DNA from: Podarcis gaigeae
Taxonomy: Eukaryota
Reading direction: 5' to 3' (one strand)
DNA length: 64,000 nt
Assembly: GCA_964106915.2 (NCBI GenBank)
Contig: OZ066918.1
The position numbers were made by a program, and so were the translations under genes. Below the pieces are notes generated by a model. The model did not search any database and was not told the origin of the DNA. It was given only the letters and a program-made list of their open reading frames with translations. Below, in pieces: positions 4,332 through 57,010 of this stretch (position 1 is its first letter; the number at the start of each line of letters is the position of its first letter).

Positions 4332-4510
4332 CAAGGGTGCCAACTTGAATAAAACATTGGGGGGAGGGCAGATAAGCCCTTCCCCTGAAAAACTGACCAC
4401 AAGACCACACACACACCATTTGAATGGCAATGCCCACCAACCTGGGGGCGCACCCCCTCAATTATTTTATTGGAGCCAAAGGGACCTTCACCCCTAGGAC
4501 TTAGCTCCTC
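4332..4510. repeat. Unclassified short repeat, probably a DNA transposon remnant; copies at 24167-24304 and 35665-35825 in the opposite orientation
   Basis: Shared terminus (c)agggtgccaacttgaataaaa and internal tggcaatgccca(t/c)caac. Confidence 0.55.
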
Positions 4511-5217: not shown

Positions 5218-6377
5218 GTTGTTGTTGTTGTTGTTTAGTCGTTTAGTCGTGTCCGACTCTTCGTGACCCCATGGACCAGAGAACGCCAGGCACCTCTGTC
5301 CTCCACTGCCTCCCGCAGTTTGCTCAAACTCATGCTGGTAACCTCGAAAACACTATCCAACCATCTCGTCCTCTGCCGTCCCCTTCTCCTTGTGCCCTCC
5401 ATCTTTCCCAACATCAGGGTCTTCTCCAGGGAGTCTTCTCTTCTCATGAGGTGGCCAAAGTACTGGAGCCTCAGCTTCACAATCTGTCCTTCCAGTGAGC
5501 ACTCAGGGTTGATTTCCTTCAGTATGGAGAGGTTTGATCTTCTTGCAGTCCATGGGACTCTCAAGAGTCTCCTCCAGCACCATAATTCAAAAGCATCAAT
5601 TCTTCGGCGATCAGCCTTCTTTATGGTCCAGCTCTCACTTCCATACATCACTACTGGGAAAACCATAGCTTTAACTATACGAACCTTTGTTGGCAAGGTG
5701 ATGTCTCTACTTCTCAAGATGCTGTCTAGGCCTGTCATTGCCCTTCTCCCAAGAAGCAGGCGTCTTTTAATTTCGTGGCTGCTGTCACCATCTGCAGTGA
5801 TCATTGAGCCCAAGAAAGTAAAATCTTTCACTACCTCCATTTCTTCCCCTTCTATTTGCCAGGAGGTGATGGGACCAGTGGCCATGATCTTCGTTTTTTT
5901 GATGTTGAGCTTCAGGCCATATTTTGCGCTCTCCTCTTTCACCCTCATTAAAAGGTTCTTTAATTCCTCCTCACTTTCTGCCATCAAGGTTGTGTCATCT
6001 GCATATCTGAGGTTGTTGATATTTCTTCCGGCAATCTTAATTCCGGCTAGGGATTCATCCAGCCCAGCCTTTCGCATGATGAATTCTGCATATAAGTTAA
6101 ATAAGCAGGGAGACAAAATACAGCCTTGTCGTACTCCTTTCCCAATTTTGAACCAATCAGTTGTTCCATATCCAGTTTTAACTGTAGCTTCTTGTCCCAC
6201 ATAGAGATTTCTCAGGAGACAGATGAGGTGATCTGGCACTCCCATTTCTTTAAGAACTTGCCATAGTTTGCCGTGGTCGACACAGTCAAAAGCTTTTGCA
6301 TAGTCAATGAAGCAGAAGTAGATGTCTTTCTGGAACTCTCTAGCTTTCTCCATAATCCAGTGCATGTTTGCAATTTG
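5218..6377 (-). mobile_element. BovB (RTE clade) LINE, 5'-truncated, with an uninterrupted RT C-terminal ORF (5235-6365)
   Basis: FIDYAKAFD, GVRQGCILSP, LRYADD and the C-terminus VHGVTKSRTRLND; (caa)n tail; 12-bp TSD agtaagctacat at 5206-5217 and 6378-6389. Confidence 0.95.
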
Positions 6378-8136
6378 AGTAAGCTACATACTTTATAACA
6401 TTTTAAAAGCATGAGCGAAGGGAGGCTGTTACTAATCAAACTTGCAAATGGTCTGTCCAGCTTGTCATTGCCTTCTGGGAGTGGCAGTGATTCTGCTGCA
6501 GGGTTGGGGAACCTGTTGCAACCAAGATGTTGTAGACTACAGCTGCATACACACCAAACCTTTAAAGTACAGTCAAAGCACATTTCCCCCCTCAAACAAT
6601 TCTGAGTCACTGGGAATGACAGCTCTACGTGGGGTGGACTACAGTGCCCAAAGTTCTTTGAGGCCGAAAGCATGCTTCAAATGTGTGTTAAAGCTATAGT
6701 ATGGCTGCAGCCTTAATTCTCATCAGCCCTGACTGCTGGCCACAAGCTGGAGTCCAATGACATCTAGAGAGGCACTAGTTTCTTATTTCCTACACTCAAG
6801 GGTCTCAGAGGTTTTCCAGTCACCCTTTTTCACTAGAGATGATAGCAATTGAAACTGAGCCTTTCTGCATACAGAGCATGTGCTCCAAATATGAGGCGCA
6901 GTCACTCCCCAAATCCTGAAATTCACAAAAATAGTGATAATTGAAGGAGCTAGAATTGTGGCTTTAGATATCTTACTCATAATAAGTATCTTTATTGAGA
7001 GAGATTTTACTGCAAACTTGTTTCTAACTGAGGGGGTTTATTGAATAGTCTTTTGATTCTATAGTGAAGCTGGACTTTCATTTCAAAACGGAGGCCTAGA
7101 TTAGTTGCATGTTTGAGATATCACAAGGTTTGGATTATAAGCTTCCCTGCAGGACAGAGTAAGAAAAAGATGGCTAATGATTAACATTCTTAAGTGAAAA
7201 GCTCCAGCACATTAAAAATAAAATAAAATACAGTAAGAGAGTCAGTGTCTATTATTCAAAGTGACAGGGTAATGGATTTAGTTTTAAATAACTGGTCTTT
7301 CCTAGCATCGTAGCCTTTGTTTGGAGAAGTTGGAATTTAGTGAAATCCTTCCCCCAGGCAGCCTCCCTGCCTATAATGGTTACATGATTGGAAGAAAATC
7401 CACAGATGCATTTTTTTGCTTTTCAATTTGGCTTTGGAACAATATGGACAACTTTCATAGTGGGAGATAACTATGAAGCCACTGAGGTCTGAGAATAAAA
7501 GTTAACCAAGTGGGAAGGCTAAGGAAGTATCTGCAGAAGAACAGATGGACTGAAAATTAATAACCAGAGAGATTTGAGTTAGCTCATTCAAGAACTATGC
7601 ATTCTTCCGGCCTCATTCACTTCTGTAAAAATTATGGGTCAAATTGCGCTCTTTCAGTCATTTTGCCTGCACAGGCATTTTAGCTTGCCAGGTGGAACAA
7701 TCCCCCTCCCCTCCCTGACATGTGTTCTGGGAATTCTCCTGGACCACCCCCCCCCCCCGGCCAATTTGGGGTGTGCATGCAGGGGACATGGGAGGGAAGC
7801 CCTGCTGTGCAAGAGGAATTCCTTGTTCAGGGCTTTTGCATCAATTCCACCCTATTGTTATGATTTGAGCTGTGGGGGAGGGGCATTAGGGTATGCCTGG
7901 TTCCCCTTCTAATTCCTATGAATAGCTAGGCTAGCTTCCTGATGAAAGGAAGCAAAGGAAGTGGCTTTATGCTATACTGCAAATGGGTGGACCCTGCTCC
8001 CTCAACAGGCTGGTAGGCAGAAAGACAATGCCGAGAACCCCTAGAACCCCTGGAATCTCGCACCGCTCAGAGATTGGGGTGGTATGCAGCACTATATATC
8101 TTAATATACAGTTAAAACGTAATGCTGTCATCATGC

Positions 8137-18897: not shown

Positions 18898-19254
18898 AGG
18901 GACACAGGTGGTGCTGTGGGTTAAACCACAGAGCCTAGGACTTGCCGATCAGAAGGTTGGCGGTTTGAATCTCCGCGACAGGGTGAGTTCCCATTGCTCG
19001 GTCCCTGTTCCTGCCAACCTAGCAGTTTGAAAGCACGTCAAAGTGCAAGTAGATAAATAGGTGCCACTCCGGCGGGAAGGTAAACAGCGTTTCCGTGCGC
19101 TGCTCTGGTTCGCCAGAAGCAGCTTAGTCATGCTGGCTACATGACCCGGAAGCTGTACGCCGGCTCCCTCGGCCAATAAAGCGAGATGAGCGCCGCAACT
19201 CCAGAGTCGGTCACGACTGGACCTAATGGTCAGGGGTCCCTTTACCTTTACCTC
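18898..19254 (+). mobile_element. Sauria SINE, full length
   Basis: Head gggacacaggtggtgctgtgggttaaaccac, central gtgcaagtagataaatagg, (accttt)n tail; 11-bp TSD tgtctgtaaat at 18887-18897 and 19255-19265. Confidence 0.92.
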
Positions 19255-21765: not shown

Positions 21766-23280
21766 TAGTTCACGTATAATGATGGAAGCATGGGAGCAAC
21801 CACATCACAACACCACAGATGAACAGGCCCTTAGAGCAAGCATAAAAGTGTGGGGAAAGTATGGGCAGGATTTTTTGTGCACTTAGAATCACAGAATTTT
21901 AGAGTTGAAAGGGACCATGAGGATTATGTAGTCCAACTTCTTGCAATGCAGGAATATGCAGCTGCCCCATACAGATATGTTGAAGTAGTAATATTTTTGT
22001 GGCCCCATTGCCTTGCCTTTGCTTATTTTTTGCAAGGGAGAAACTGATTGGAGCCATTACATCAACAGGTTGTACTTGTGGTGTTAAAAAACTTTGGAAA
22101 CTGCAGTTTTTCATGGCAAAAATTTAGACTTTAATGAGCTGGCTGGCAGCTTGGTCATTATTTCTCGTATTCATTAGGCAGACTCTACCAGGCCAGAAAT
22201 CAAACATTTGAACTTTTCTAATGCTGTTTAGAGTGTGTGTCAGGAATATAAATGCATTCTGCTTAGATGAAAGCAGGGCCCATTATCTGTCTATAAACCT
22301 GTACTGTCCCATTCACCCGTTGCCTTCTTATTTTCCCATTTTTTGTTTTGGAAAAATTCAGACGCCTTTCATGTTGTTTACCAAAGGAAACATTTTGAGC
22401 ATTCAGTAATAAAACTAAGGGGGAAATCCTTTACTTCCTCTATGCCTCCTAGCTAGTAACCACATCAATGTGAAGCAAGTATGTTTTTGGTACTGACCCA
22501 GCAAAACATTGCCGCAAATATTTTCAAGATGTCTTTCGAGTCATATTGGTACTCCAGGCTGAGGCAAAGCACACACACACATCTTCCTTGGAAGCAAACC
22601 CTTTCTTTCTTCACAGATGCATTTTCTAAATTGCACTGGTTTCCTCATAATTAAAATGCAGAGGCAGCAATCCTTAGGCAACTTATTCTGGGGATGTACC
22701 ACAGATTTGTATCTGGAGCACATGAAATGTGTGCTGGAGCAGCAGGCATTTCCACACGATCTTTTCACATGTCAATAGAAACATTCCTTTGCCTTTCAGT
22801 GCAATGTTTAATAAGCCTCACTTCCTCTGGCAGGGATGGGGGAAGATTCTGCGTTGTTTGTATTACAGAAATTACCTGGAAGAAACTGCATCTTATTATG
22901 GTTATTAAATTAAGAGCATTTATATAAACATCTCCTCATCCTTTAAAGCCAGTTTTGGTAAAGAGCATATTAGCTACACTGAGTAAAATGTTTGTTTTCT
23001 AATAATATGCTATTCCCATGAGGCATTATTGAGGGGGGAAATATTTCTGTCTCCACTGTCTCCGTTTCAGCCTTTCATTAGGCATCCAACCAGTCTGGTG
23101 TAATTTTGTCCAGGTGGAAATCCTGCATTCTGCCTCTTCTCTTCCTTTCTCCACCTTTTCTGTGAAGTTTTTCTTTACTCAGCCTCTAGTTTCCTATCCA
23201 CTTCTGCCACATTATACCCATAGTCAAACCTAAGCATGTGCAAATGGAAAAATGACAATTTCTGTTTACCAACGCCTCTA

Positions 23281-23511
23281 CAGTGGTACCTTTGGTTACG
23301 AACTTAATTCATTCTGGAGGTCCGTTCTTAACCTGAAACTGTTCTTAACCTGAGGTACCACTTTAGCTAATGGGGCCTCCCGCTGCCACTGCTTGATTTC
23401 TGTTCTTTTCCTGAGGCAAAGTTCTTAACCCGAGGTACTGCTTCTGGGTTAGTGGAGTTTGTAACCCGAAGTGTTTGTAACCCAAGGTGTTTGTAACCCA
23501 AGGTACCACTG
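23281..23511 (+). mobile_element. pogo/Tigger-like MITE (CAGTGGTACC family)
   Basis: TA|cagtggtacct...aggtaccactg|TA. Confidence 0.88.
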
Positions 23512-23513
23512 TA

Positions 23514-23747
23514 TAGTGGTACCTCGGGTTACATATGTTTCAGGTTACATATGCTTCAGGTTACAGACTCCACTAGCCCAAAAATAGTATCTTGGGTTAA
23601 GAACTTTGCTTCAGGATGAGAACAGAAATCACGTGGCAGCAGCAGGAGGAGGCCCCATTAGCTAAAGTGGTGCTTCAGGTCAAGAACAGTTTCAGGTTAA
23701 GAACGGACCTCCAGAACGAATTAAGTACATAACCAGAGATACCACTG
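23514..23747 (-). mobile_element. pogo/Tigger-like MITE, inverted and abutting the previous copy
   Basis: Shares the TA at 23512-23513; the body is the reverse complement of the family; ends accactg|TA. Confidence 0.88.
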
Positions 23748-24304
23748 TACTTCTTTCCCCTCACTTCCTATGTTGGATTTTAGGTTGCAAGATCTATGGA
23801 GCAGGAGCGTGCCCTTTGCAAAGCTCCATGTACACAAATGGTGCTATATACTGTCAAAGAGGTTGCTGGCAGTAAATCACACCATTCGGAATTGCAGTTA
23901 ACTCTTTATTAGCAAAAACATGATCTTCAAAGGCTTGGCTGAGTGTTAGGCCTAATGAGCACAACAGCTGATCCCCAGTAGGTCTGGCCCCATGAATCAT
24001 TTGCCAAGTCCCCCCTCCCCAGTGGCGTAGCGTGGGTTGTCAGCACCCGGGGCAAGGCAAGTAATTTGCGCCCCCTAACCCGTGGGTTTTAGCACTCGAG
24101 TGCGAGCGCGCCCCTCCCCCCAAGATGTTGCGCCCGGCCTCCCTGCACCCCCACGCTACGCCACTGCTTCAGGCCCCCCAATAAAACATTTGAGGGGGCC
24201 AGTCCCCCAGTTGATGGGCATTGCCAATGTGGTAAACAATGTAGGGCGGGGCTTACCTGCCTCCCCCCCCCAAATATCATACTGTATTCACGTTGGCACC
24301 CCTG

Positions 24305-24512
24305 ATGAACTCAGCGGGGCTAACTTCTGCCCCGCAAGCCTTTGCACCTCCGCGTCTCCTTTCCGCTCTATATGTAAGAGAGTGAAGGTCAGGCTGGCAG
24401 CGCGAATAAGGGCCCCGCTGCTGAAGGCCTCGCCCGCCATGACCTCCTGGTCCACAGGCAGGGCAAGAAAGTGCCTTTTCCTTGGGGGGGGGGGGAGTCT
24501 TAAATTTCAAAC

Positions 24513-24551
<39 letters not shown>

Positions 24552-25330
24552 GAATATCAAATGTGTGTGGTTTCTCCACCGACGACTCGCCATGTGCGAG
24601 GAGGAAGGTGGGCTCCCTTCACCTCCCCGTCTCCTTAAGGGAAAGGGAAAACGATGTGAGGAAAAGCGACGCGGGACAGCGAGCGAGGTTTTCCTCAGAG
24701 CCTTTTCCCGCTGCCCCCTCGCAAGACAGCCCTGAAACCGAGCGCAGAGTGAGGGGCGGGGCCCCCGGCGGAGTCTCGCTGCCCCCCAACGCCTCTCGAG
24801 GGGGCATGAGGGGCGCCATGTCAAGGGCGCCCGCGGGCGCAACGGCGGCTCCTGTCAGGGCACGAGGCGGGCGGGTGTCCCTCGCGCAGCGGCAGCCGCC
24901 GCCGGCTGGCCCCGCCTCACCCGGCGCCTCTCCCCCACTCACCCCGTCCGCCCACCCATATCCCGCTCAGGAGGGGCCGGTGGGCTGCCGAGCGCCTCAT
25001 TGCAGCAGCACCAGAGAGGGAAAGAAGTCCGCCTCCTGCCGCCGCCGCCTCTTCATCCCCAGCAGCAACTTCCTTGCCCAGCTCCCCGCCGCCGCTTCCT
25101 TCTTTCCCTGCTTTGCAGTAGCAGCAGCCGCCGCCGCTCCTCCTCTCCTCCCGGGGACGATGCTCTGGCTCCTCAGCGGCAGCTCCCGAGCCGTGTCCCC
25201 GCGGCACCTCCGCTCCCCCGGGCTCCCCTTCGCCGCCTGGCTCCTGCTGCACCACCTGGGGGCAGCGCCCATGGCTGGGGCTTCCTCCTTCCCGAGACAT
25301 GCGGCTCTGCTACAGCCTGCGCTGTAGCGA
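24305..25330 (-). other. CpG-island cargo resembling exon 1 plus the start of intron 1 of an unidentified gene
   Basis: Very high GC/CpG, GGC/GCG runs, GC boxes, donors GG|gtgagt (exon end 24943) and CGG|gtgagg (24921), and gccgcATG at 25300 open through the first donor. Confidence 0.55.
24514..24550. repeat. (ATT)n microsatellite inside the hAT cargo
   Basis: About 12 perfect ATT units. Confidence 0.95.
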
Positions 25331-25757
25331 CTCCGGAGGCGGCGACTCCGGAGGCTGCGAGTGCGCCCCCCCAGATGTTGCGCCCGGTGCGGCCGGCACC
25401 CCCTGCACCCCCCACGCTACGCCACTGCCCCTCCCTACAGCTGTCTAAGTCCCCTCCTCTCCAGGGCTTTCCCCAAGCAATCATGGACTGTGCCTTTGTG
25501 CAGCCTGCTGCAGCTCTGCCCGTTTCAGCTCTCTTCTCAATCAAAAGGACTTTTTTTTTTAATGCCAAAGTTGTGTCATCAATGAGGCTGTAGACTGAAG
25601 GGCCATAAGATGTGGCATAAGTGTGTTCCTCCTCTCCTGTTCCACCCATGATACTGCCCCATTATCACCAGCATATCTGAGGTGTACCACTGGGATATCT
25701 GTTATGCAGCATATCTGGTGCTTTGCCAGTGTAGCAGAGCTTCTACCATACCCTATA

Positions 25758-25969
25758 CAGTGGTACCTTGGGTTACAGATGCTTCAGGTTACAGACTCCG
25801 CTAACCCAGAAATAGTACCTCGGGTTAAGAACTGTGCTTCAGGATGAGAACAGAAATCACGCGGCAGTGGGAGGCCCCATTAGCTAAAGTGGTACCTCAG
25901 GTTAAGAACAGTTTCAGGTTAAGAACGGACCTCCAGAACGAATTAAGTTCTTAACCCGAGGTAGCACTG
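25758..25969 (-). mobile_element. pogo/Tigger-like MITE
   Basis: TA|cagtggtacct...aggtagcactg|TA; same family as 23514-23747. Confidence 0.88.
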
Positions 25970-26964
25970 TAGTTCCTCAGCTGGTATATCTTGTGTATAG
26001 GGTTGTATCCCCCCAAAATCCCATCTCCATTATAGTATTATACTATTATAGATTACCAAATATTTCAGAGAAAGGTTTCTATCAGAGAAACATATCTTGA
26101 AGAAACTGCAAAGCGTGTTAGGAAACCTATTTGCATAATGGGATATCAAGATATATGTTTGTATTAGCGTCATGAAAAGGATTTTTAATGGAATAACTGC
26201 CTTTTTGTAGCTAAGTAATTAAGTGAACAAGAGAGATTTTTATATAAAAAATCAATAGTGCAGTATTTCAGTGAGTGATATTTTGGGAAGTTCTGGCATA
26301 AGTAACAGTTTTTCATCCTCACTAGATCACATAGAATGCACTATTATTTGGAAATTTAAATTACTGCATGCTTTTATAAAAAATATGTAAATGGGTTTTA
26401 AATGCAAAGAGTAAAGTACATATTCACAGAGACTGGATTTTTTTAAAAAAACCCCACGTTTTGAAGATCACATGGATTACAGATAACACTTAGTTTAAAA
26501 AGAAGCAAAAAAAAATTATGAGGATATGACTGTATTTTCTAAACCCATTAAGAGAGTTAACACAGTAGGAGAGCTCAGCATATGCTTAAATATGAAAAAT
26601 GTGAACATCTTGTGATCTGCCTATTCATAATTCTAAAATCGGTGTCCATAAGATTAATATCAATTAGTGGTATCAAATCCTGAAGTAGCACCCCCAAAAC
26701 ATTTACGGGAACTAAAGAATACCATTTATTTCTGCACAGGGTAGGATACATTTCTACTCAGGGGGGTAGCATGCTGGGGAGGCCTAGGGCCCCACATACA
26801 GGTCACATTCACACCATACGTTCAAAGCATGTGGCTTTCCCCAAAGAACCATGGGAATCTGCTTATCTCCCAGACATGGGAACCACCCAACCCAAAGCGC
26901 TTCCATCTTTCCAGGAGTCAAATACAGGTTTCAAACACCCATACCGGCCTCCAGCCTTACCCAC

Positions 26965-27130
26965 TGTTATGTACTGAAGTTCTCACCCTGGGCCAGCAGG
27001 GGGATACTGTAGATAGTTATGCAAATAAGGGATCAAAAGTGACGTTCAGTGATTGGATAGTTTTAGAAAGTTGTTACAGTAACGTTGTACTGGAGCTCTA
27101 TATAAGCAGGCTGACTGAACCCTTCAGTTC
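26965..27130 (+). promoter_or_regulatory. Compact Pol II promoter-like cassette, probably a truncated LTR U3
   Basis: TG start, CTCF-like ggccagcaggggga (26991), octamer atgcaaat (27019), tgacgt (27040), attgg (27052) and tatataa (27099). Confidence 0.5.
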
Positions 27131-28303
27131 ATACATGGGCATACATGGTGAAGACATTGGGGAATCCTATGTCTACAGTTGCACACCAAGTTACATCCAT
27201 GTCCCAGTATACAGATCTCTTTGCCGTTTGCTATTTTTTAAAACCCCCCTGCAAAGATGAATTTAACATTATGGCTAGTGGGATCTTCAGATTAACTAAT
27301 CTATACAAAAACACCAGGCTTATGGTTTATGCAGATGACTTCAGGGCATACGGCACAAGGCTTTCTTGAGCCCACCCTGTTTAGGATTTTCAGAAACACT
27401 TCTGCCTCAATATTATCAATAAACCTCTCAATAATAATGAAAGCCTTTTCACTCTAATGTGATTGCTTGTGTGTATCCTCTCCCTGTGTTGCATATCTTT
27501 AGTGCTCGTTTTAATCCTAACTACTTGTGTTCAGTCAATAAAGCAGTCTGTTGAGCAGACTACATACAGCGCATTGAAAAATAGGCTATAATCTTAACTG
27601 TAAACAGAATGATGTTTTCCCCAATATTCTGCTGATTCAAGCCTGGTGAACCAAACATTCAGTCAGAGAAGCATGGTTCTGTTTTGCAGGAATTTCTGTT
27701 CTTTGTGCTGTTTCTTTTTTCAAACAGCAGTCTATCACAGCCAGGTGCAAGACATTAATGGAACTGCTAACAAAAATCTCTTTCCCCCCACCCCTTACAT
27801 CCACACTCAGGCAGTAAATGAAAGGTAATCCATTTCAAGCATCAATAAATCTAGTTCCAAGTGAGCTGTCCTGCAGTTACCAGTACACAATGTGAATGCC
27901 TTCCATTTACAAGTTATTTAATGTGTAATCTGTTTTTATACATAGCCTTTCAAAAAGAAAAGAAAAGAAAGGATTTGATTCAGTGGGCAAATTCAACTAA
28001 GACCTTTTGCTTTGAGTTTTGCCCTGTACTCAACTAAATGGAAGCAGATTAAACAACAATCTTTATTTTTGCTATCTTGTGGAGTCCAAATTAGGGCTGA
28101 CCTTGAAGGTACTTCGAAGGTTGTAGGTGGTTCAGAATGTTTTCTTGCAATCTCAGGGATGTCATAGGAGCTCACAACCACCCATGTTTGAATTGGGCTA
28201 CTTTTCATCCATATAGCCTAAGTGATATGAGAGCCCATCTAAAACTTCTTCACAAAACTCGGTGTGGTTTCTGAAGGTGTTTTCAAAGCATCTTTCATAA
28301 ATC

Positions 28304-28458
28304 NNNNNNNNNNNNNNNNNNNNNNNNNNNNNNNNNNNNNNNNNNNNNNNNNNNNNNNNNNNNNNNNNNNNNNNNNNNNNNNNNNNNNNNNNNNNNNNNN
28401 NNNNNNNNNNNNNNNNNNNNNNNNNNNNNNNNNNNNNNNNNNNNNNNNNNNNNNNNNN
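28304..28458. other. Assembly gap (N run)
   Basis: N bases. Confidence 1.
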
Positions 28459-30717: not shown

Positions 30718-30851
30718 NNNNNNNNNNNNNNNNNNNNNNNNNNNNNNNNNNNNNNNNNNNNNNNNNNNNNNNNNNNNNNNNNNNNNNNNNNNNNNNNNNN
30801 NNNNNNNNNNNNNNNNNNNNNNNNNNNNNNNNNNNNNNNNNNNNNNNNNNN
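30718..30851. other. Assembly gap (N run)
   Basis: N bases. Confidence 1.
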
Positions 30852-33800: not shown

Positions 33801-36800
33801 ACTTTTCCCTGATGGCATTTCAGGGAAGTTAGGTAATCATAAAGAAATACAGCACACAGTGCCTTTTTCTTATTATACATTCCTTCAGCCATTCCTTAGC
33901 ACAGCTTATCTAATTATTTGTTATTGATCAATTATATGTTTTCATGATATCCAATAAATGAATAAGAAAATAAACACAGTACTTCCAGGAATAGCTGAAT
34001 GAATTTATCCAATTTTAGGGAGCATTCCCATTTTATTTTTCCTTTTAGCAGCTATGTTGGAGCATTTGAACAAAATGTGAGAATATTTTTTTTGATCAGT
34101 TGAACTGCTGGCATGCTGAACTTTTGCTTGTCAGAAGTACTGTGCTAATCAGATTGTTTTAATGCATCGTGGATCATTATATCTTATTACGTTCTTCCTT
34201 TCCCCACATTATTGTCATGTTCTGTTGTGAAGAAATAACACAAACTTGAATTACTGAGGGCCAAACTGCCCACTTTTATTTTGGAGGAACTCCTGCCACA
34301 TAATCTGATCTGGAACATCTTCCCCATTAGGATTGGGTTCCTATCTTGATTTTCTGCTGAAAATCACCCTGTATCTGGCTGTTACTTTCCTCTGAATGAT
34401 GACAAAGGTGCTGTTTTCAAGCAATACTTTCTGGTGCAAAAAGCGGTCAAGAGAGTTATGTTTGGCAGAAAACTGATGTGGGATACCAATTCAGATGTAG
34501 GAGATGTAGAAAAGCATGGGAAAAGTATGTCATGTAATGGAAAAGTGGCTTTCTATCACTATTATTCCAGACTGACACTCCAGGAATAATCAGGCCAGAA
34601 CCATGGACAGTAGTGCCATCTTGGTCCATCCCTGCCAGGAGGCCTAATGATGCTAAGAGGTCCAGGAGAGTTGCACACCCTCTCTGTTCACATTTCCATG
34701 CGGATTATCCAGCAGGGAAACCAAGACAGTTTCATTTCCAAATCCAGGCACAAGCCAAAACTGGGATTAATCTAACTAATTATTTCAACCTAGGAAACTC
34801 TAGTGCCAAAGCACAACCGCAAATATTATAAACACAAGCTGAAATACATAAGCACAGACGCAAAATCCATGCCTAATACAACTTCACTGGACTTTCTCAT
34901 TGGTGGCATAACTACTGCCAAATCAAGCCTAATATATGAAGTCTGTGGTGCACAGCTGAAACTACCCAGGGAAGCACTGGAGACTGTTTTATACATGGAG
35001 AGAACAGACAATATGCTGAGCATGGGAGCAGGAATTGCCTCCAAGTATCTTCTGTGCTGTTCCAGGGAATCCTGGGGAACTTGCATGCTACATGGATTAT
35101 CTGCTACAGCTGCTTTCCTTCTTTAAAACATTTCTCTGTTTTTCAGAGGGAAAGAGCTTCCTTGCCACCACAAGGGCTCACAGAATCCACTTCTGTTGTC
35201 CATTTCTTAGTCCCCACAACACAGGAATATAGTTTAAGAGCATGTGAACATCCACAGATAACAAGGACTCCTCCAAAACAAAGTTGATGTGAACAATCAT
35301 TTCTGACCAGCAAGAAAACACCATAGGATGCCCACATCATATGCTTCAAGGTTTTTATGACCATTTTGTGGGGGAGTGGAATGTGTTCATAGTGTACTGA
35401 TGTAACAAGGTGCAGGAAAATGCAGATCCATATACTTTATTAGGTATAATGCAATCAATTATTTTCTTTGAACCAGTTATATAGAGGTTTAGTATAGAAT
35501 GCGAAAGGAAAATATGCATTATAATTATTCCGCTCCTTTATTATTGTTCATTGATTCACCTTTTCCTTTCTTCCTCATTGTATATAATATATATTTATAT
35601 TATATGAAATAATAAAATAATGAAAAAAGAGAAAAAAGAACAAAGAAGGAAAGTGCCAACTCCTAGGGACTGAGGTCCCTTCGGCCCCTGTAATAAAACA
35701 TTTGAGGAAGCCCCCCTCCAAAGTTGATGGGCATTGCCATTAAAATGGTGTGCATGTGCCACTTTTTGTGATTATGTGGGGCAAGACTTGCCTCCTGCCA
35801 TATTTTATTCAAATTGGCACCCCTGATTGCCAGCATCCACCTCAAATAGCCAACATACTGTGTGCTGCCCTCTTGTTGTTTAATGGTTCAATGTTTATGA
35901 ATTTTGTATTGAATTGGTTTCTCTTTAACGCTATAGATTTATTGGAGCATTTTTAAAATTGTTCACTTTGCCTTGTTGTTTTGCCAATATTTTGATGTCA
36001 CTGGAATCATTTTCAGTAGTTTGTTAGCCACTTTGGGTTTCCCTTTGAAGGAAAAGCAGAATTCAAATAAAGACTAATATAAACAGAAAGTTACAAACTA
36101 TGTCAGATCTCCTCCCAAAGATATTCACAAACTCTGGAATTCTATTGAAAACATTCTTGGCTCAGGAAACACCTCATGAGAAGCAAAAGGCTGCAGATTT
36201 TTTACTTAAAGAAAAGAGCTTTGTTGACTTGAGGTAGATGATAAGCATTGTGGGGAAATGTATAATGTACAGCTTTCTCTGTGTTGGCTGTGCCTCAACA
36301 GAGAATAAGAAACACTGCTTTATTTCCTCTGATCATAAAAAACCACCCACAACCTCCAGAAATTATATATATATCTATATGAAAACTGTTTCTTTCCATG
36401 GGCATAAACTCCAAAACATACTTATGACAAATTTACTCTTTATCAGCAGAATAGTTTGGTCTATTTTAGACCTAAGACACATTCTTTTAGTTGAGAAAAT
36501 GTCAGGCAAACTAATCTCTCCCACTTTGCTTGAATAGACAACTGACCTTCCTAACACAAGTCAAATGATCGTTGTCATTATGACTCTTTTATGATCTTAC
36601 TAATGAAGTCCACAGTTTATGCTTCTAGTCTGATTAATAATGCTGGAGAATTAACCAAGCAGAGATAATTCATTAGGCTGATCACAGTTCTTGGCAAGTG
36701 TATTTATTTTGTTTTTAATTAGTTACAGAAAAATAATATGGGAAATTGTCCTATCTCTGCATGTCTGTATGACTCCAGTGGAAAGTCTTGAGATGCATGA

Positions 36801-40487: not shown

Positions 40488-42129
40488 TCCATGCTTCCGC
40501 TTCATCCATGAGCCCTGCCAGAAAGAGCTTGACTATCAAAACTGGACAGCCAAGCTCCATGTGGCAATTGTCTTTAAACACTTGTAGACTGACATGGAAT
40601 CACCTGCATGGCTGCCATACAACTGTATTGTGTGCTCCAAACCTTATGCCAGCATTGCTGGCCACATCAGTACAGGGACCGGTAAACAGATTTGCACAGC
40701 CAACCTATGTGTGGAACCTGGGGTTGTTTTAGGGAATGTGACTGTCTCTTCACAGACCCTTTGTTCATGAGTAGCCTTGCTATGTGATAATCTGTGAAAA
40801 CACTCAGAAGGGGAATAACTCTTCTGAGAAAGGCATGGGAAGAATGCAACTGTGTAGTGAAAATTGTGATTATCTTGGGGACTCCTTGTCATGAGCCATT
40901 GTGGCAGTCTCTGTAATAGCTAGACAAGCCTCCAGCTTCTGTGGTATCACTGATTGTTTAGATTAGTCCTGTGATTAGCTTGTCAGTCTTACAGAAAGCC
41001 TGAGTTGTGTGTAGGCAGTGTTAAATAGGTCTTGATCGTTCAAGGTAAAAACAGATTTCAATTTCTGGCAACTAAATCTTGTCTTAACTTTCTGATATTT
41101 ATAAAACTAGTTACATCTCTAAGAATAAACACACAGCAAATTAAGTGAGCACTTGTCTAGAGTCAAAGACATTTTTTCAACCAAAGGAAGATCAGCTGCC
41201 TGACTTCCTGAAGGTATTGTGTAAAAAAAAAGGGGGGGTCATTGTTCTTGTGAATTTGAACTCTCGACACTTTAGTTTACTGGAAGGAGAAAAACTTGCT
41301 TAACTAGGCTTCTAGGTTAGGTTTCTAGGTATAACCTTGCTGAATTTTCCTATTGTCCTGGTCTTTCTGGTGAGACAGCAAAAATGCATTCACATGGTAA
41401 TGAGACAATCAGGTGTAGAAAGAAAATGTTATCACTATCGTTCAATAAGACCTGTTGCAAGGTTAATAAATTCCACAGGCTAAAGGGACCATCAAAGTCA
41501 GAACAAAGTATAAGGGCAGTGAAGCAGTTTCTACAGATGATGCTTCATTTGTGGATGGCAGGACCTAGATAGAAAGCAGCAAGTTGAGGATGAACATGAA
41601 CAATTCATGGATTGCACACTTTTGTGCTACAAATGGGTTAGCGTGTACACAGCCTATGACCAGAACATGATGTTGGTTTCCAAATGCTTTAGCCATTCTC
41701 CCGAAGCTGTGTTTTAATTTGGCATTGCATGAGCCCACATCCTCTAGGCAGTTACACTGATGGAATTAAAATGAAAACAAAATGCAGATGACATCTCATT
41801 AGGTGCCACAAATGTTTCCAGTTGTTGTTTTATGAATGCTGAAGGAATGAAATTAAAGGTATGCCACAGAGTTAGGAAAATCAAAACACTTCAGCGCTTT
41901 GTTATCCCCTTAAGGCAATGTAGCTCTTATTAGTGTAATAGAAACCTTCATGTGTGTGCCAGCTTTTCAGTGTATTAACATTCTGAAAAAACACTGCAGA
42001 CACAACTCTGAGTGCTAATGTATCTGCTAATGTATTTACCTGATGAAATTTGCAACTGTGACAGGTGCTGTGTAGTTTAACAGCATACTATCTTCTGATT
42101 AAGAGACAAGGGAAGAAGAGTTGCTTATA

Positions 42130-42344
42130 CTGTGGTACCTCTGGTTACGAACTTAATTCGTTCATGAGGTCCGTTCTTAACCTGAAACCGTTCTTAACCT
42201 GAGGTACCACTTTAGCTAATGGGGCCTCCTGCTGCCGCCGCACGATTTCTGTTCTCATCCTGGGGCAAAGTTCTTAACCCGAGGTACTACTTCCGAGTTA
42301 GTGGAGTCTGTAACCCGAAGTGTTTGTAACCTGAACTACCACTG
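42130..42344 (+). mobile_element. pogo/Tigger-like MITE
   Basis: TA-flanked, with the same body as 23281-23511. Confidence 0.85.
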
Positions 42345-44501
42345 TACGGGACAGAGAACTTCTTTAGGTCTGTGAAAGGGCTTCTGTTGGAATTAGTACT
42401 GTCAGAGAGCCACTCTGTGCATGAATAGTGGGGCTGGTGATGGACCAAAGCACTTTCTGACCTTCTAAAAATGGGACATTTCCACAACTGTTTTCTTTGC
42501 TTGCCCAAGGCTACTATGTTGCCCCTTCTCCACTGTGCCATAAACTTCAGTACGTTTTTCTAGCTCTCCACTTCTGATCTCAGCTGGCAACCCTGGGACT
42601 AGGTGAAACCTTATTGAGAGAGCAGATTTGACTCAAGGGGTTATTTCTGATGATATTTTTTTACAAAAAATCACATGGGCTAAGAAAGGCTATGGAGTGC
42701 TCCACCTAGGAGTGTATGACAATGAGAAACAGCAATGGTAAAAAGATGGCAAGCATTTTAATGGTGGATGCATTCCGGAACTTAGCTTTGTGGCATGTAG
42801 TTCGTGGCGACATTTCAGATTGTGAATACCTCTGAAATTTTCATTCCACAAACCCTTGGTAGTGCCATCTTAAAATCTCCACTTTGTCAGCAGTGAGTTG
42901 ATTCAGAAAGGGACTTCTGAAATAAATCACTCAAACACCATTACGGATTTGATGGATGAAGCTGACACAATAACAATGCAAATTCTCATCTTACTGAAGC
43001 AAGCATATTTCAAGTGATGGCACTTGACAAAAAGAAACCCTGCACTTCCTCTAACCATCAGAGATATAAACATAAGAAGTTTTCACAGTTTATTCTTCTT
43101 TATCTTAACCATCATCATAATCATCATCCTCATCCAAAATAGCTATATTTCCGCATCTATTTTTATTCCCCTGTTGAAAGAAACAATGGAAGGTGGAAGT
43201 GCAAGAGCCACAAGTGCTTCTTAAAGTCTATTTTGCAAAATTACATTACTACCAAGATTTGAAAATGGTACTGAAATTGATTTTTTTTAGAGTTTTATGT
43301 TCAGATGAACAGGTTGCTGAAGATTTGTATTGCAGGTAATGATTAAAGCACGTTATTTTACAACTTTTTTTATCAGCCACATTATGTTAATCATGCTGTA
43401 TTCCATTTTTCAATAAAAGGTCAACAGTGCACTGTTTGTTCAGAATATGCAATTTAAACTTCATGTCTGTCATTAGAGATAATCTAGGCTTGCTGTATCA
43501 AGTGGGGTTGTCATAGTAACTAGACCCGAGATCTCTGTTTACAGCCTTTGGAGAATAAACATTTTGCCTTTTTTTTCTTGGGGGAAAAAAAAGTCAAACA
43601 ATTAAATAAGGTTTGGAAACAAAACCATAATAGCCCAGAAAGAGAGACGTCATTCGTCAAAAATCAATATATGTGATGCAGTTGGTACAAGTCGAAGCAT
43701 TCATGCAATTGACTGACAGCTATAGTGAAATATTTCCCCTGGGATGAAGGAAGTAACTGATAATGTATCACAATGCCTGGAAGCAGAATTCATTTAGCTT
43801 GGCTAATGGGTTTTGTTCCAGCTATTATAACACTGAAGAATATTTGCTTAAATTTCATTTAATGCTAGATAAAGGGTTTAAAAATGTTAAAAACATTGGT
43901 CGTTCATAAAAGCACAAAGAGATTTTACTCTTGTTTTCTGTGAGACTCTTTGCCTTCCTGCTGAAGATCATTCAGAGAGCATTCATATTTAACACTGGCT
44001 TTGCATTTTTAAAATTCTTTTCTGCTGGGCTTTTGTGTGTGTGTTTGCATGCTCCCACTTGCCCACAAATGTAGGAATAATCTTTGGCCATTTCTGGTAA
44101 CATGCACTAACACATTGTGGCACCGCGGCCGAGTTGTCTGACATCTGATTTCAAATACTCAAATTGGCCAGAGTGCCTGTACTCAAGGGTAGAATTCATT
44201 TTGCTAGAGATGTATCAAAACATTACCTCTCCAGTCCAAACAAGGACAAAGAGCAGTCACACTGCCACTGAGCATGTCCAGAGTGTATCCCTTGCTGATT
44301 CATCTGAATCCAGAACAATGAGAGTTGGCAATTAATCTAGATTCTGACTAGGAGACAAAGTTGGCTAATGGTGGGCATTGGATACTAGCCTCATTTGGTA
44401 GTTAAGCTGCCAAGATTCTTTGAGTTAACCTACTAACCATTGTAGTCCTTCCTTAGCTCCAGTAACATGCAAAAACCTTCCGCTCATATGGTTTGGTTGT
44501 A

Positions 44502-44743
44502 CAGTGGTACCTCGGGTTAAGTACTTAATTCGTTCCGGAGGTCCGTTCTTAACCTGAAACTGTTCTTAACCTGAAGCACCACTTTAGCTAATGGGGCCTC
44601 CCACTGCCACTGCGCCGCCGGAGCACGATTTCTGTTCTCATCCTGAAGCAAAGTTCTTAACCTGAGGTACTATTTCTGGGTTAGCGGAGTCTGTAACCTG
44701 AAGCGTATGTAACCTGAAGCATATGTAACCCGAGGTACCACTG
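44502..44743 (+). mobile_element. pogo/Tigger-like MITE, least diverged copy in the window
   Basis: TA|cagtggtacctcgggtta...taacccgaggtaccactg|TA with perfect 18-bp TIRs. Confidence 0.92.
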
Positions 44744-47089
44744 TATTGTGTTGTTACAATCCACCATTAAGAGTCAATAGGCACTTACACAATTAGTCAC
44801 CACAGCAAAAGTGGGGTGAGAAGGCAGATTATTGTCTATAATCCTATGCATACCTACTCAAATCATATAAGTCCCACTGAGATCAATTACACTTACTCCC
44901 AGGTAAGTGCATATATGTTTACAGCAGCGTCAGATTTAGGGTGGTTCAAGCAGCTCCCCTGCACAGGACGCCGAGCTGAGGGAGTGCAAAATAATTAAAA
45001 TAATTTTAAAAACCTAAAATGAACAAACAAAACAAAACAAAAAACAATTTATACGGGTACCTACTGAGAAGTTCCATTAAGAATGCAACTGTACCAAAAG
45101 GAATTCTTGTGAAAACAAGTAAGAAAGAAAACTGGGGGGTGCACTGAATTTTGTCCTTGCTCAGAGCGTTATATTACTGAAGTCCACCCCTGTTTGAAGC
45201 CTTCGAGGACACTCAGAAGCAAGCCTGATTGAGTTCAGTTGGGATTTCTGCTAGGGAAGGGGGCATAGGGTTACACTCTGAGGCTATCCCAGACCTGCTT
45301 GTCAGCTTCTGAGTATACACGCATAGTAGGAATGGGGAATCTGAGTAACTTTGGCTCCCATCACCCCTGGCTGCTGGCAGTGCTGGCAGAGGCTGATGGG
45401 AGTTGGAGGCAACAAGACCAGGAGGGCCACAGGTTCACCATCAGGGCTGCACTGCTAGTCATTTTCTTCAACTCCTGCTGCCATTGCAACATACCAAGTG
45501 GTTTGCCAGCAGCCACACTGCTTTGAGATACATGATAAGCTGTAGAGGGAAGAGCACTGGTCCCTCACAAACCTGTCAGAGACACTAGCATCCATTCTGG
45601 TGCAGCAATGTGGCCGGGATATCTGAGAATCTAATGGGGGTGTAAATGCAGCTTCCTTATAGCTTAGCAGAAGATGTTGGGAGAGGGCAAGTGGTATCAT
45701 GGTAAAATTTACATCAAAATGAAGTTCCTGAAGAAATCCTAGCTCTCTGCTGGTAAGGCTGGGGGGCAGGAAGGGGGCACAGAAGGCTGTGTACACTAAT
45801 GTTGCCATTCAAGTTTGTAAAGCACTCCTCACTCACATCTGTGCTTCCTCAATGAATAATTAAGAGGAACAGTTGCTGCCAAAACCACAAATGTGCGCTG
45901 CTAATGTGCTTGCACCGCACTGCCTCAGCTGGGAGTTTCCTGAGCTTTGGAAGGTGTGCATATACAATCCAATAAAGATGACTGGTTGATTTTCTACATG
46001 CAATTTAGCTTCTTTCCCTAAAGGAGAATATCTTCCATGCTCTGATCTGTTTGCGCAAGAGCACAAAGTTGCCCCCTAATTATCTGCTCTATTTGTAGTG
46101 CTTGACCTTGACTGTATTTATAATGCAGGGTGTGTGTGGGGTGTGTGTGTGTGTTGAATCTGGAAATCAGGTACAGGCTTGTGAAGCTGTTGGTCTGTAT
46201 TTTTATGAAAATGGGTAAAGCAAACTGAGGGTCTTTACCTTCACACTAGTTTTATTTTGCTTTGGTTATTAGATTGCCCTGCATTGCTTTGACATTGTAT
46301 TTTATAAATATGTTGATAATAAATGCCACAGGTCAACTAATTTTTTTTAACCCTCACAACATGAATTCATTTAGTTATGAGTTATGTCTGTCGTCTTATT
46401 TTTCTGCAATGGAAAATAAATTATTCAGCCTCACAACAGCCTTGTGAGGTTGGTGATGGCTGATAATGATGTCTACTGGCTATCTGATGGGTTTTATAAT
46501 GAGTTGGGGGGTTAAACGTGCAGTTCTCACTTGCAAGTCCCAAAACCTCTGAGGGACACAAACAGCTGCCTTGCACCATCATAAGATCCCAGCTTTCCAG
46601 GTAGCATGAAAGAAATTCCCTGGAACTTCCTGGGCTTTTCTGAGAAACACAACTCTGTAATGATTCTACAATCCAAATCACTTTTTAGGAATTGGGAGAA
46701 AGGAAGCTGTCTACAAATTTATCTAGGCTGTATCTGAAGTGAACCAGGCAGCACATTCAGCTCTGAAGACTGGCTCAGAGACAAGCTGAATTTCAACCAC
46801 AGATCTCCAAAGCTCAGACCCTGAACCCGCCTTGAACAGAGGACTCACCCTGGAACACACAAATGGATGATAAAGAAAAGAGGTATCCAAGTGTGTGTGA
46901 AGCATTACTCCTTCACAGCAGCGTAACCACCTTTGGTTCCTACCAGGTATGGGGGAGAAAGTCAGTTCAGGTTGCATTTAAAGGAAAACTTACCTAGTTC
47001 ACACTTTCTGAAACAATACGTGAACCAAAACACAGACAACCTTCAAAATTTGTACTTACCTGAATTTTGCAATGCAGCTCCTGGTCAAG

Positions 47090-49778: not shown

Positions 49779-50861
49779 GGGGGGGGACCTGAAATACAGG
49801 AAAAATTTGTACTATACAGGACAGGTGGAACCCTAAGAGACAACCCAGATTCCGGAGACTTCCGGAGGCGGCGCGAAGGGTAATGGCAGCCCTTTCCTAA
49901 CCGGGAAGGGAGCTCCGCTCGAAAACGGGTCGTCCGCTACGGCAAAGCGGAGACCCACAACGGAAAACCGCAGGCGGCAGAAGCCTGCGGTCCTGGGACC
50001 CGGCGGGCACCAGGAGCGGCCCCCAAAACGTTGAAGGAACCCCGTAAGGGGCTCCGGATCGTGGAGGAGGCTGCGGCGCTGAGGGTCGTTCCGCAATCGG
50101 CGGAGTGAAGCCGCGTAGCTGTTGCCGGTGAGCGCTGACCTTTCTTCCTTGATTTGGCACTTTGGAAAGCAGCAACCCGTGAGTAATAAGGACTTTTAAA
50201 CAATTTAAATATTAAAAGCTGCAGAATTTGGCTGAAAGCGGAGGACGGAAAAAAAGGAAGTCCGTCTTCCGCTGTCACTAAACTTCAAAGCAAAGAGCTG
50301 GAGGAGTGGAGGCAGTAAGTGAACTTTTAACAAATTGGATCTGAGCATTCATTGAACTTTCTTTTTAATGCAGAAAAGGACTGTAAGCATTGGATTTATG
50401 TTTTGATTTGGATTGTGGAATCTTCCTCTGTTGAATTTACAATTTAAAGAAGAAACCCAGGTGCTGGAACTGCCTGGCAACAGTAGCAGTCAGCTTGCAG
50501 ACTTAAATACTTTGAAACATAAATTGGGGAAAAATCTGAGGGGTTTGGACTTTGTTACTTTGAAACACCATTTGAAGCACCAGCAAGCACTGCTTGAGAC
50601 ATTGTGTTTTTGTAATACCAACTCTGCTGAAAACCTAACATTTGAAGGTTTTTGGACATTAACTTTATTTTCTCTGTGAATTGCACTAATTGATTCCTTC
50701 CTGAAAGACATTTTAAGTTCCCCCTAGAGGCTTTTGGACTTTACAGCAGTGACATTGTTTTACTTTCTATTTCCCGACCTCCTGGCTGACTGTTACCATC
50801 TGGGCCGTCTTTTTCTCATGGGAACAACTCAGCTTGACCTTGACTTTTAGATAAACTTGGA

Positions 50862-51929
50862 ATGAGTGGCGCAAAGAAAAAGGAGTCTAAAGAAAAAGAA
50901 CAAAGACCAAGAACCAGACAAACAACCTTAGCCTCAACTTTACACCAACGCAGATCGTCTGTGCCTATTTTGCCTTCTGAGGAAGAAACTGCTTCACTGC
51001 CACGTGCAGGGGAAGGAGAAACAGAGGAATTACAACTGGAAGATATGGCTTCAGGAGCAGCTGCTTCTATCTTAGAAAAAATCTATGAAAAATTGGAATC
51101 TTTGGACAAGAAAGTGGAATCTTTGGACAAAAAGGCCGATGAACAAACATTTAAAATAGATCAAAACACAGAATGTTTAAAGAGACTAACTGGACAAGTG
51201 GCACAGAACGTTCAAACAATTGCAGAATTGAAGGAGGCTACAGGGGAGAACAAGAAATTGGCTGAAGACACTAGCCAAAGACTTGGAAAGCTAGAAAAAG
51301 AGGTGAGACCACTCAACAAACAAGTAGGTGAACATCAGACCTACCTCTCGATGATTGAATTGAAAAACAGGGAGACTAATTTAAGGATAAGGCTGGTACC
51401 GGAAGTGGAAGAAGATAACTTGGCTGAGTTTCTGACCAAAATATTCTCCAAGCATTGGAGCTTAGAGGAGAAAGACTTCAAGATTACATCAGCTTTCAGA
51501 CTTGGAAGATTGACAAAAAAAGACAAACCCAGAGACTGCTTGATAACACTGAGATCAGAGGAGGAGAGGGACAAGATTTTGGGCCTACACTACGGGAAGT
51601 CACTGGACATTTTGGACAAAAGGATCGAAATTTACAAGGACATTCCTAAACAGCTTTTGGATTTGAGATCTGAATATTTGGAACTAGCAAGACTGCTGAG
51701 GAGTAACTCCATTATCTTTAGGTGGGACTTTCCGCAAGGACTATCTTTCACTTTTAGAGGGAGGAAGATTAAAATTAGAACATTGGAAGACAGAGATAAG
51801 TTTCTGAACCACCACGGAGAAGACCTTCATAAAGGACTTGGATTACCTTCGGGGCCTGGAGCACCAGAGGCACCTGCACCCTTGGATTCTGAAGATCCAG
51901 TGAATAAGGTACCACCCCCAGAAAAATAA
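50862..51929 (+). CDS. L1 ORF1p (coiled coil, RRM, CTD), intact, 355 aa
   Basis: Heptad-rich region followed by RETNLRIRLVPE, AFRLG...KPRDCLI, IEIYKDIP and FRWDFP, typical of L1 ORF1. Confidence 0.9.
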   Translation: MSGAKKKESKEKEQRPRTRQTTLASTLHQRRSSVPILPSEEETASLPRAGEGETEELQLEDMASGAAASILEKIYEKLESLDKKVESLDKKADEQTFKIDQNTECLKRLTGQVAQNVQTIAELKEATGENKKLAEDTSQRLGKLEKEVRPLNKQVGEHQTYLSMIELKNRETNLRIRLVPEVEEDNLAEFLTKIFSKHWSLEEKDFKITSAFRLGRLTKKDKPRDCLITLRSEEERDKILGLHYGKSLDILDKRIEIYKDIPKQLLDLRSEYLELARLLRSNSIIFRWDFPQGLSFTFRGRKIKIRTLEDRDKFLNHHGEDLHKGLGLPSGPGAPEAPAPLDSEDPVNKVPPPEK

Positions 51930-51944
51930 CCAGATTTATTCAGG

Positions 51945-56369: not shown

Positions 56370-56733
56370 AAAGGTAAAGGTAAAGGTACCCCTGCCCGTA
56401 CGGGCCAGTCTTGACAGACTCTGGGGTTGTGCGCCCATCTCACTTAAGAGGCCAGGGGCCAGCGCTGTCCGGAGACACTTCCGGGTCACGTGGCCAGCGT
56501 GACATCGCTGCTCTGGCGAGCCAGAGCCGCACACGGAAACGCCGTTTACCTTCCCGCTGGTAAGCGGTCCCTATTTATCTACTTGCACCCAGGGGTGCTT
56601 TCGAACTGCTAGGTTGGCAGGCGCTGGGACCGAGCAGCAGGAGCGCACCCCGCCGCAGGGATTCGAACCGCCGACCTTTCGATCGGCAAGTCCTAGGCGC
56701 TGAGGCTTTAACCCACAGCACCACCTGCGTCCC
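56370..56733 (-). mobile_element. Sauria SINE, different subfamily
   Basis: (aaaggt)n tail, ctatttatctacttgcac core and head ...cacagcaccacctgcgtccc. Confidence 0.9.
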
Positions 56734-56863: not shown

Positions 56864-57010
56864 CAGTGGCGTAGCGTGGGGGGTGCAGGGGGGGCCGGCC
56901 GCACCGGGCACAACATCTGGGGGTTAGGGTTAGGGGGCGCAAATCCACGGGTTAGGGGGCACAAATTACTTGTCTTGCCCCGGGTGCTGACAACCCACGC
57001 TACGCCACTG
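56864..57010. mobile_element. Minimal hAT MITE (147 bp), same family as 24020-25427, opposite orientation
   Basis: Identical 17-bp TIRs; 8-bp TSD gttcccgt at 56856-56863 and 57011-57018. Confidence 0.92.

Follow-up and report, generated by a model that had tools for sequence, protein, structure and literature searches.

A probable composite hAT-type element with a CpG-island-like cargo in the lizard Podarcis gaigeae

The closest described relatives of the element considered here are the Pack-TIRs, transposons with terminal inverted repeats (TIRs) that enclose other DNA. In a survey of 100 animal genomes 370 young Pack-TIRs were catalogued, 208 of them borne by hAT elements (Tan et al., 2021, Nat Commun; PMC8277862). 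Nearly all animal Pack-TIRs are single-copy, which has been attributed to transposition-independent gap filling, and gap-filling and FoSTeST models have been proposed for their formation (PMC8277862). Only four multicopy Pack-TIRs of any superfamily were found, three in Xenopus tropicalis and one in an alligator; in X. tropicalis the element Pack-hAT-N8_XT carries 291 bp of the 5′ untranslated region of CAPSL (PMC8277862). Here we describe positions 24020–25427 of a 64,000-nucleotide stretch of DNA from the lizard Podarcis gaigeae (contig OZ066918.1 of assembly GCA_964106915.2), the whole of which is termed the window and which contains runs of N at 28304–28458 and 30718–30851. An earlier note on this DNA had described the unit as a Pack-type composite hAT transposon with a captured CpG island and first-exon-like sequence, and had called such capture rare in vertebrates, a fair remark given 208 Pack-hATs in 100 animal genomes and four multicopy Pack-TIRs.

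We consider 24020–25427 to be one copy of a composite, non-autonomous hAT-type element, present in few copies and recently amplified, that moved as one piece by means of its outer ends, and we place the probability of this reading at about 0.75. Movement as a unit, which the earlier note had also proposed, is supported by three observations. Firstly, a target-site duplication (TSD) is present at the outer ends only. Secondly, the enclosed DNA (the cargo) and its two internal junctions are multicopy, whereas the flanks are single-copy. Thirdly, a repeat of a second family, which we call B, is cut exactly at the inner terminus of the first component of the composite.

The 17-mer CAGTGGCGTAGCGTGGG is the TIR of the family to which the ends belong (family A). 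It occurs exactly five times in the window, compared with 0.04 occurrences expected from shuffled sequences, and all five sites are perfect over 17 bp: 24020–24036 (+), 24150–24166 (−), 25411–25427 (−), 56864–56880 (+) and 56994–57010 (−). The first two bound A1, a complete 147-bp family-A miniature inverted-repeat transposable element (MITE) at 24020–24166 on the + strand, which lacks 10 internal bp that the other copies have. The third closes A2, the right-end fragment (about 60–80 bp) of a second family-A copy at 25347–25427 (+), the homology of which to family A begins at about 25347–25366. The last two bound a solo, cargo-free family-A MITE that is inversely oriented (56864–57010, −). The 147-bp MITE, the cargo and a second right end lie in the order that the earlier note had reported, within the perfect 17-bp TIRs.

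Both copies of the TSD, at 24012–24019 and 25428–25435, read CCCCTCCC and adjoin the outer ends. The eight bases beyond the inner right end (after 24166) are CTTCAGGC, unlike the left flank, and the solo MITE has GTTCCCGT on both sides, its own exact 8-bp TSD. In these respects a scan for the 17-mer and a reading of the flanks agree with what the earlier note had reported for the outer ends, the unmatched inner end and the empty family member. The note had also entertained a chance match of low-complexity flanks. Elsewhere on the + strand of the window CCCCTCCC is found three further times, once inside the MITE, which corresponds to a frequency of about 5 × 10⁻⁵, and random pairs of sites in the window match at eight out of eight positions at a rate of 2.4 × 10⁻⁵. 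At these frequencies low complexity does not account for the match.

The locus therefore displays the pattern of a composite, with two ends of the same family in direct orientation, a TSD at the outer ends only and an inner end that keeps an earlier flank. Over 25368–25427, A2 is 96.7% identical to the solo copy and 77.8% identical to the right end of A1, from which it also differs by a 10-bp indel (the deletion in A1). This degree of difference indicates that two distinct source copies supplied the right ends. Joints running from 24081 to 25368 are also seen in contig data from ordinary family-A members. At the boundary of the cargo and A2 (25327–25355, +) the 14-nt sequence GCGACTCCGGAGGC is present twice, with a single base in between, a duplication that may represent a repair scar. 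The TIRs and TSD enclose DNA that is not transposable element (TE) sequence and encodes no transposase, apart from 138 bp that belong to another MITE, of family B.

That remnant, at 24167–24304 (+), is truncated at its 5′ side and ends ...TTGGCACCCCTG. We aligned it with the two other family-B copies in the window, at 35662–35815 (+) and about 4335–4495 (−). Homology opens at 24167, the base immediately after the terminal G of A1, and both of the other copies reach at least 22 nt further to the left (..TCCTAGGG..GA.GGTCC), a part that is absent from the cargo copy. To the left of A1, this locus has unique DNA and not the missing portion of B. As B is cut exactly at the end of A1 and its 5′ part is absent here, the inner junction was formed at another locus. 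From the alignment, the simplest reading is that the junction is a fossil of an earlier insertion of A1 into a B element elsewhere, from which only A1 and the DNA to its right would have arrived at the present site. A breakpoint placed exactly at a TE terminus favours a real insertion junction that was carried along. Family B itself is MITE-like, with termini resembling YAGGGGTG...CACCCCTG and copies that are about 78–82% alike; matching TSDs were sought for the two full copies in the window and none were found.

Evidence on copy number came from public sequencing runs, which exist under the label of this species and under no fewer than six related ones. For four of them, k = 31 contigs, each with its mean word depth, were compared with 22300–27300 at 90% likeness. 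In run X3, an independent sample with the same species label (organism A), contigs from the single-copy flanks have depths of 12.9–14.4 and contigs from the cargo 82–130. The corresponding values are 77–103 and 474–733 in run X4 (organism B), and 8–12 and 38–51 in run X6 (organism C), in which the immediate flanks (23722–24004 and 25444–25778) are again at single-copy depth. The X3 contigs tile much of the composite interior with 0–3 differences from the window: 24141–24268 spans the junction of A1 and cargo at depth 82.2, 24292–24506 spans the end of B at 100.9, 24629–24980 and 24951–25275 lie within the cargo at 99.8 and 127.5, and 25246–25371 spans the junction of cargo and A2 at 129.8. The near-uniform word depth of these unitigs, together with the excess over the flanks, indicates about 6–10 near-identical copies of the interior in organism A, both internal junctions included. 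By the same ratio organisms B and C have about 4–9 copies. Organism H (run X15 only) holds the cargo too, at a copy number that is uncertain. Ribosomal DNA, small nuclear RNA or histone-type multicopy genes were considered as a source of the excess and were ruled out, there being no Rfam or Pfam match and an excess of only about eightfold.

The copies differ between species. At position 24365 one letter is present in all copies of organisms B, C and H and another in about eight copies of organism A; species-specific letters of this kind suggest that each species has had its own recent burst or a continuing turnover. Relative to the collapsed X3 contigs, the window copy has about six private differences in about 1060 bp. 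Two contigs are candidates for parental or older copies of the cargo. One, from X3 (24246–24504), has a depth of 8.6, which is at the single-copy level, and is 92% identical, with letters seen in other species. The other, from X4 (25038–25293), has about 1.5 times the single-copy depth, and to the right of 25293 it continues for 96 letters that are unlike the window; this point of divergence hints that the true capture breakpoint may lie near 25293.

Family A is far more numerous than the composite. Its summed depth is about 4.3 × 10⁵, compared with 13 for single-copy DNA, which corresponds to the order of 10⁴ copies, and its density in the window is about one copy per 25 kb. Such abundance makes closely linked family-A copies plausible. 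The canonical family-A MITE also holds two or three telomere-like repeats (GGGTTAGGGTTAGGG / CCCTAACCCTAA); in the window GGGTTAGGGTTAGGG is contained in the solo copy, and the repeats lie at 56918–56935. Spread over about 10⁴ copies, these would amount to many interstitial telomere-like sites across the genome.

The cargo beyond the B remnant falls into two parts. The first, 24305–24599, is non-repeated DNA with an (ATT)12 microsatellite at 24514–24549 and is partly covered by the multicopy contig 24292–24506. The second, 24600–25346, is a CpG-island-like core, delimited by its composition and represented in the three multicopy contigs that cover 24629–25371. Overall, the enclosed DNA has a GC content of 0.64 and an observed/expected (o/e) CpG ratio of 0.73, compared with 0.23 in the flanks. 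Within the core the GC content is 0.69–0.81, CpG o/e is 0.7–1.0 and there are 7–14 CpG per 100 bp, with runs of GCC and CAG and GC boxes near 24754 (GGGGCGGGG) and 24912 (CCCCGCCTC). The CpG island that the earlier note had placed in the unit is real by the thresholds used (GC > 0.55, CpG o/e > 0.6, length > 400 bp), all of which are exceeded over 24401–25500. Three other stretches of the window also pass, at 18.2–18.7, 49.7–50.3 and 56.3–57.0 kb. The first and last of these are within or adjoin a repeat family with copies at 18899–19253, 56372–56733 and 57123–57458, with clear overlap only for 56.3–57.0 kb; the stretch at 49.7–50.3 kb is without a long match in the rest of the window. Two inverted copies of that repeat family (56372–56733 and 57123–57458) flank the solo MITE.

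Whether the island came from the 5′ end of a gene is a separate matter from whether it moved. By composition the cargo resembles a CpG-island promoter; the first exon or gene 5′ end that the earlier note had proposed is unproven and has no support other than composition. The core contains a predicted ATG open reading frame (ORF) on the + strand at 25160–25327, comprising 55 codons (25160–25324) and a TAG stop (25325–25327). Its correct-frame translation had no match among proteins of 141–450 amino acids and none in the PDB, and an exact look-up in a collection of 15 billion proteins did not find it. Four minus-strand or junction ORFs were likewise absent from the protein collection by exact look-up. 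Pfam gave no domain in four cargo frames, and Rfam, searched at E ≤ 1 over 23000–26500, gave only a sub-threshold match to mir-624, in a flanking short interspersed element (SINE). In a simple consensus scan of the + strand no donor-like site of at least 7/9 was present downstream of the ATG. The strongest donors are on the minus strand (GTGAGT at 24942 and GTGAGG at 24920), the strand also favoured by the GC skew, which is −0.26 to −0.39 on the + strand over 24867–25266. A minus-strand mini-exon with an ATG at 25000, 19 codons and the GTGAGT donor was considered and dropped, since the T at 25000 is private to this copy and is C in all other copies and species. Expression of the cargo from run X15, guessed to be RNA, was set aside as well; a depth of 2–3 on a few unique bins and 38–46 on the cargo fits low-coverage DNA of a species with more than ten copies equally well.

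The alternative that survives best accepts a mobile unit and holds that its cargo is not gene-derived, being anonymous GC-rich intergenic or repeat filler in which the ATG ORF is a by-product of GC-richness. We regard this as a substantial possibility, short of an even chance. All six cargo frames are open for 100–285 codons, which is what a GC content of 70–80% would produce, and the failure to find a domain, a structural RNA, a PDB entry or an ORF homologue in the searches above, together with the want of a good donor site after the ATG, points the same way. The first 138 bp are a MITE remnant, and with the microsatellite they make the cargo in part generic genomic DNA that includes a CpG island. 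Filler of obscure origin is moreover the rule in the Ds-l4 and hobo elements (PMC3260210; PMC3014272). Set against this, a CpG o/e of 0.7–1.0 at a GC content of 0.7–0.8, accompanied by GC boxes, is the look of vertebrate promoter islands, and the protein similarity search covered only proteins of 141–450 amino acids.

The best-supported account of how the composite came about is as follows. A1 would have inserted into a family-B element at an earlier locus. The composite would then consist of A1, about 1.18 kb of what had been its right-hand flank (the remainder of B, the microsatellite and the CpG-island-like segment) and the right 60–80 bp of A2. Two routes could have joined these parts. In one, two closely linked family-A copies would be mobilized together as a macrotransposon; in the other, repair synthesis would switch by homology into an ectopic family-A copy and run out through its end into the flank. 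The other breakpoint, with its truncated A2 and short tandem duplication, has the appearance of repair. A transposase acting in trans would take the left end of A1 and the right end of A2, skipping the right end of A1 itself, and the whole piece would be excised and pasted into CCCCTCCC with duplication of that 8-mer. Repeated mobilization in trans by a hAT transposase would have generated the present copies, the cargo riding passively. We infer the agency of a hAT transposase, the different target sites of the other copies and the way in which the composite first arose, whether as a macrotransposon or by a repair switch.

A less probable alternative, which we think unlikely, is that the composite was born at this locus. 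A MITE would have resided at CCCCTCCC; after a break or excision, repair would have copied its left part, switched into A1 elsewhere, run about 1.2 kb into the flank of A1 and returned, through microhomology, to the right end already in place. The TSD would in that case stem from the first MITE insertion, with the window copy as the founder of the others. This scheme predicts the exact layout observed, in which the complete right terminus of A1 leads into foreign flanking DNA, A2 is truncated and the TSD is intact, and the tandem duplication at the junction of cargo and A2 could be its scar. Gap filling with template switching is also the documented origin of most animal Pack-TIRs (PMC8277862). 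On the other hand, where there are about 6–10 copies any one of them is a priori likelier to be a descendant than the founder, and the private differences of the window copy do not mark it as an obvious master. In the survey of Tan et al. breakpoints were biased to TE interiors, whereas here one lies exactly at a TE terminus. The window copy, with its exact TSD, is thus most likely a descendant, and it could be the founder.

The weakest alternative, that two independent MITE insertions, one later truncated, bracket the native CpG island of a local gene and that the identical 8-mers are a coincidence in C-rich DNA, draws on the abundance of family A and on flanks that are somewhat C-rich, but is highly improbable, since the cargo and both internal junctions are multicopy beside single-copy flanks in three species (the reverse of the single-copy, syntenic island that the earlier note had envisaged), the 8-mer is not repeated directly to the right of A1, the flank match is expected by chance at about 5 × 10⁻⁵ and the B element is cut exactly at the end of A1 with its other half absent from the left flank.

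For the assignment to hAT, which the preferred reading of a mobile composite includes, we turned to the ends. hAT TIRs are short, of about 10–25 bp, and follow a YARNG start rule, and the perfect 17-bp TIRs, which start CAGTG, are in keeping with both. On these sequence features the 8-bp TSDs and the CAGTG... termini fit the hAT superfamily. The 17-mer CAGTGGCGTAGCGTGGG has more than 120 exact matches in JGI metagenome contigs that are mostly AT-rich, non-coding and eukaryote-like and come from few projects (Ga0056123/131/132, Ga0209681/788, Ga0210059 and JGI24158/24159/24022). These loci (L001–L120; examples are L091 628–773, L083 1240–1418, L035 546–1487 and L020 967–4224) hold MITEs of 113–200 bp that share this TIR, show terminal similarity over about 34 nt and are flanked by 8-bp duplications. 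On the eukaryote-like contigs, 15 of 24 short TIR pairs have 8-bp flanks that agree with at most one mismatch; in the full list, exact agreement at the 8-bp flanks is seen for three of 32 pairs, one of them a 942-bp element. The metagenome MITEs support the 8-bp TSD length for this TIR family and show that the family is not confined to lizards. Its distribution may be wide, or may reflect horizontal transfer. The 17-mer probably matches some of the loci, GC-rich and bacterial in appearance, by chance alone. None of the metagenome loci sharing the TIR contains the cargo, and a 23-mer spanning the inner junction has no match in the JGI metagenome contigs. The only ORF with a hAT dimerization domain among the 120 loci (L025 3911–4669, +; E = 4.5e-07) is not enclosed by the TIR; the same contig also carries one family-A right end, at 143–159. 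A text search of the literature for the TIR string returned no paper.

Several observations count against a recently mobile hAT composite. hAT subgroups differ in their adherence to the target preference nTnnnnAn, and neither TSD in the window (CCCCTCCC and GTTCCCGT) fits it. Among about 12 non-redundant metagenome TSDs of the same TIR, a small sample counted by eye, T is at position 2 in five and A at position 7 in seven. An autonomous hAT element, which would encode a transposase with a BED finger, a DDE core and a hATC dimerization domain between TIRs of this kind, was found neither among the window ORFs examined with Pfam nor in the 120 metagenome loci. No contig or joint listed for any run bridged 24019/24020, 25427/25428 or the empty site, the MITE being too repetitive; the flank contigs of organisms B and C end 15 nt before and 9–17 nt after the element. 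None of the other copies could be followed into its flanks, and in principle the additional copies may have arisen elsewhere by duplication without transposition. Of the several cargo-bearing copies with different TSDs that the earlier note had named as support, the copies are present by depth (about 6–10) and their TSDs are not readable in k = 31 contigs. The locus could be a birthplace instead of a landing site. Finally, neither a donor locus nor a parental gene for the cargo was identified in the 64-kb window or by the protein, Pfam and Rfam searches; within the window the cargo has no paralogue apart from the family-B pieces.

Other repeats lie nearby. Direct and inverted copies of a SINE-like repeat of about 210–250 bp (23278–23753, 25765–25975, 42128–42346 and 44499–44745) bracket the insertion site, and the summed depth of this repeat, about 1–2 million compared with 13 for single-copy DNA, corresponds to a very high copy number. 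A long interspersed element at 50844–55681 (+) encodes Exo_endo_phos endonuclease and reverse-transcriptase domains, broken into several frames, and a separate reverse-transcriptase fragment is present at 5238–6383 (−).

If the preferred reading of a composite moved by its outer ends is right, a young family of about 6–10 copies in several related lizards would show recent hAT activity in an amniote and a hAT family able to move a whole CpG-island-like segment. The same island at several unrelated sites would constitute a natural experiment on whether CpG-island sequence alone dictates an unmethylated, promoter-like state and on whether new first exons arise from transposed 5′ ends of genes. 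The capture route, in which the flank of the element itself was carried along, would also be recorded in the layout with its three termini, a history that is usually impossible to reconstruct. Should the cargo be anonymous filler, this would be an ordinary composite MITE. A bolder proposal is that a very abundant, still-active hAT MITE family in this lizard clade repeatedly builds and amplifies Pack-type composites carrying CpG-island promoters or first exons; we regard it with considerable doubt. Pack-MULEs prefer the GC-rich 5′ ends of genes, and the proposal, if true, would supply a vertebrate counterpart of that bias. Islands moved in this way would then remain CpG-rich (unmethylated) where they landed, giving rise to new transcription starts and to chimeric first exons.

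We close by comparing the lizard element with known systems. The Pack-MULEs and other Pack-TYPE elements of plants are, like it, TIR transposons that capture and amplify host DNA. They differ in belonging to the Mutator superfamily, in TSDs of 9–11 bp and long TIRs, in numbering hundreds to thousands of elements and in having identified parental genes (PMC8903248). Ds2, Ds-l4 and the hobo elements of Anolis are closer in superfamily. As presented in PMC3260210 and PMC3014272, they are non-autonomous hAT elements with nothing but their termini in common with the autonomous element, and their captured filler often includes other TEs and occasionally gene fragments. In the accounts of these elements that we drew on there, the filler lies between one left and one right end, and in no case is a CpG island described. 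A text search for CAGTGG in PMC3014272 retrieves Anolis families, none of which has CAGTGGCGTAGCGTGGG as its TIR.

In architecture the best parallel is with the Ac/Ds macrotransposons of maize, in which, according to work cited in PMC3260210 and PMC3744419, two hAT elements of one family lie in direct orientation and their outer ends mobilize the DNA between them. There, as here, the TSD is at the outer ends only and one partner may be fractured (A2 in our case). The maize examples cited are experimentally observed single events under Ac, mostly involving retrotransposon-rich DNA, and are not known from those citations as amplified families. The lizard composite is, in contrast, a small multicopy natural family in a vertebrate, the two-element origin of which is deduced.

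In content and copy number the nearest systems are the vertebrate multicopy Pack-hATs (PMC8277862). These share with the lizard element a non-autonomous, hAT-type organization with TIRs and an 8-bp TSD, non-TE DNA resembling the 5′ part of genes, several copies and no transposase of their own. The lizard element is unlike them in that its filler is not nested within one element; there are instead three termini, contributed by a complete MITE with its former flank and a truncated right end. Its copy number is also higher (about 6–10), its CpG-island-like cargo is larger, and the family occurs in at least three related species. A text search of the literature for such composite elements in squamates returned no paper. 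The lizard element belongs to the rare class of multicopy Pack-hATs, within which its architecture is that of a macrotransposon-like composite.

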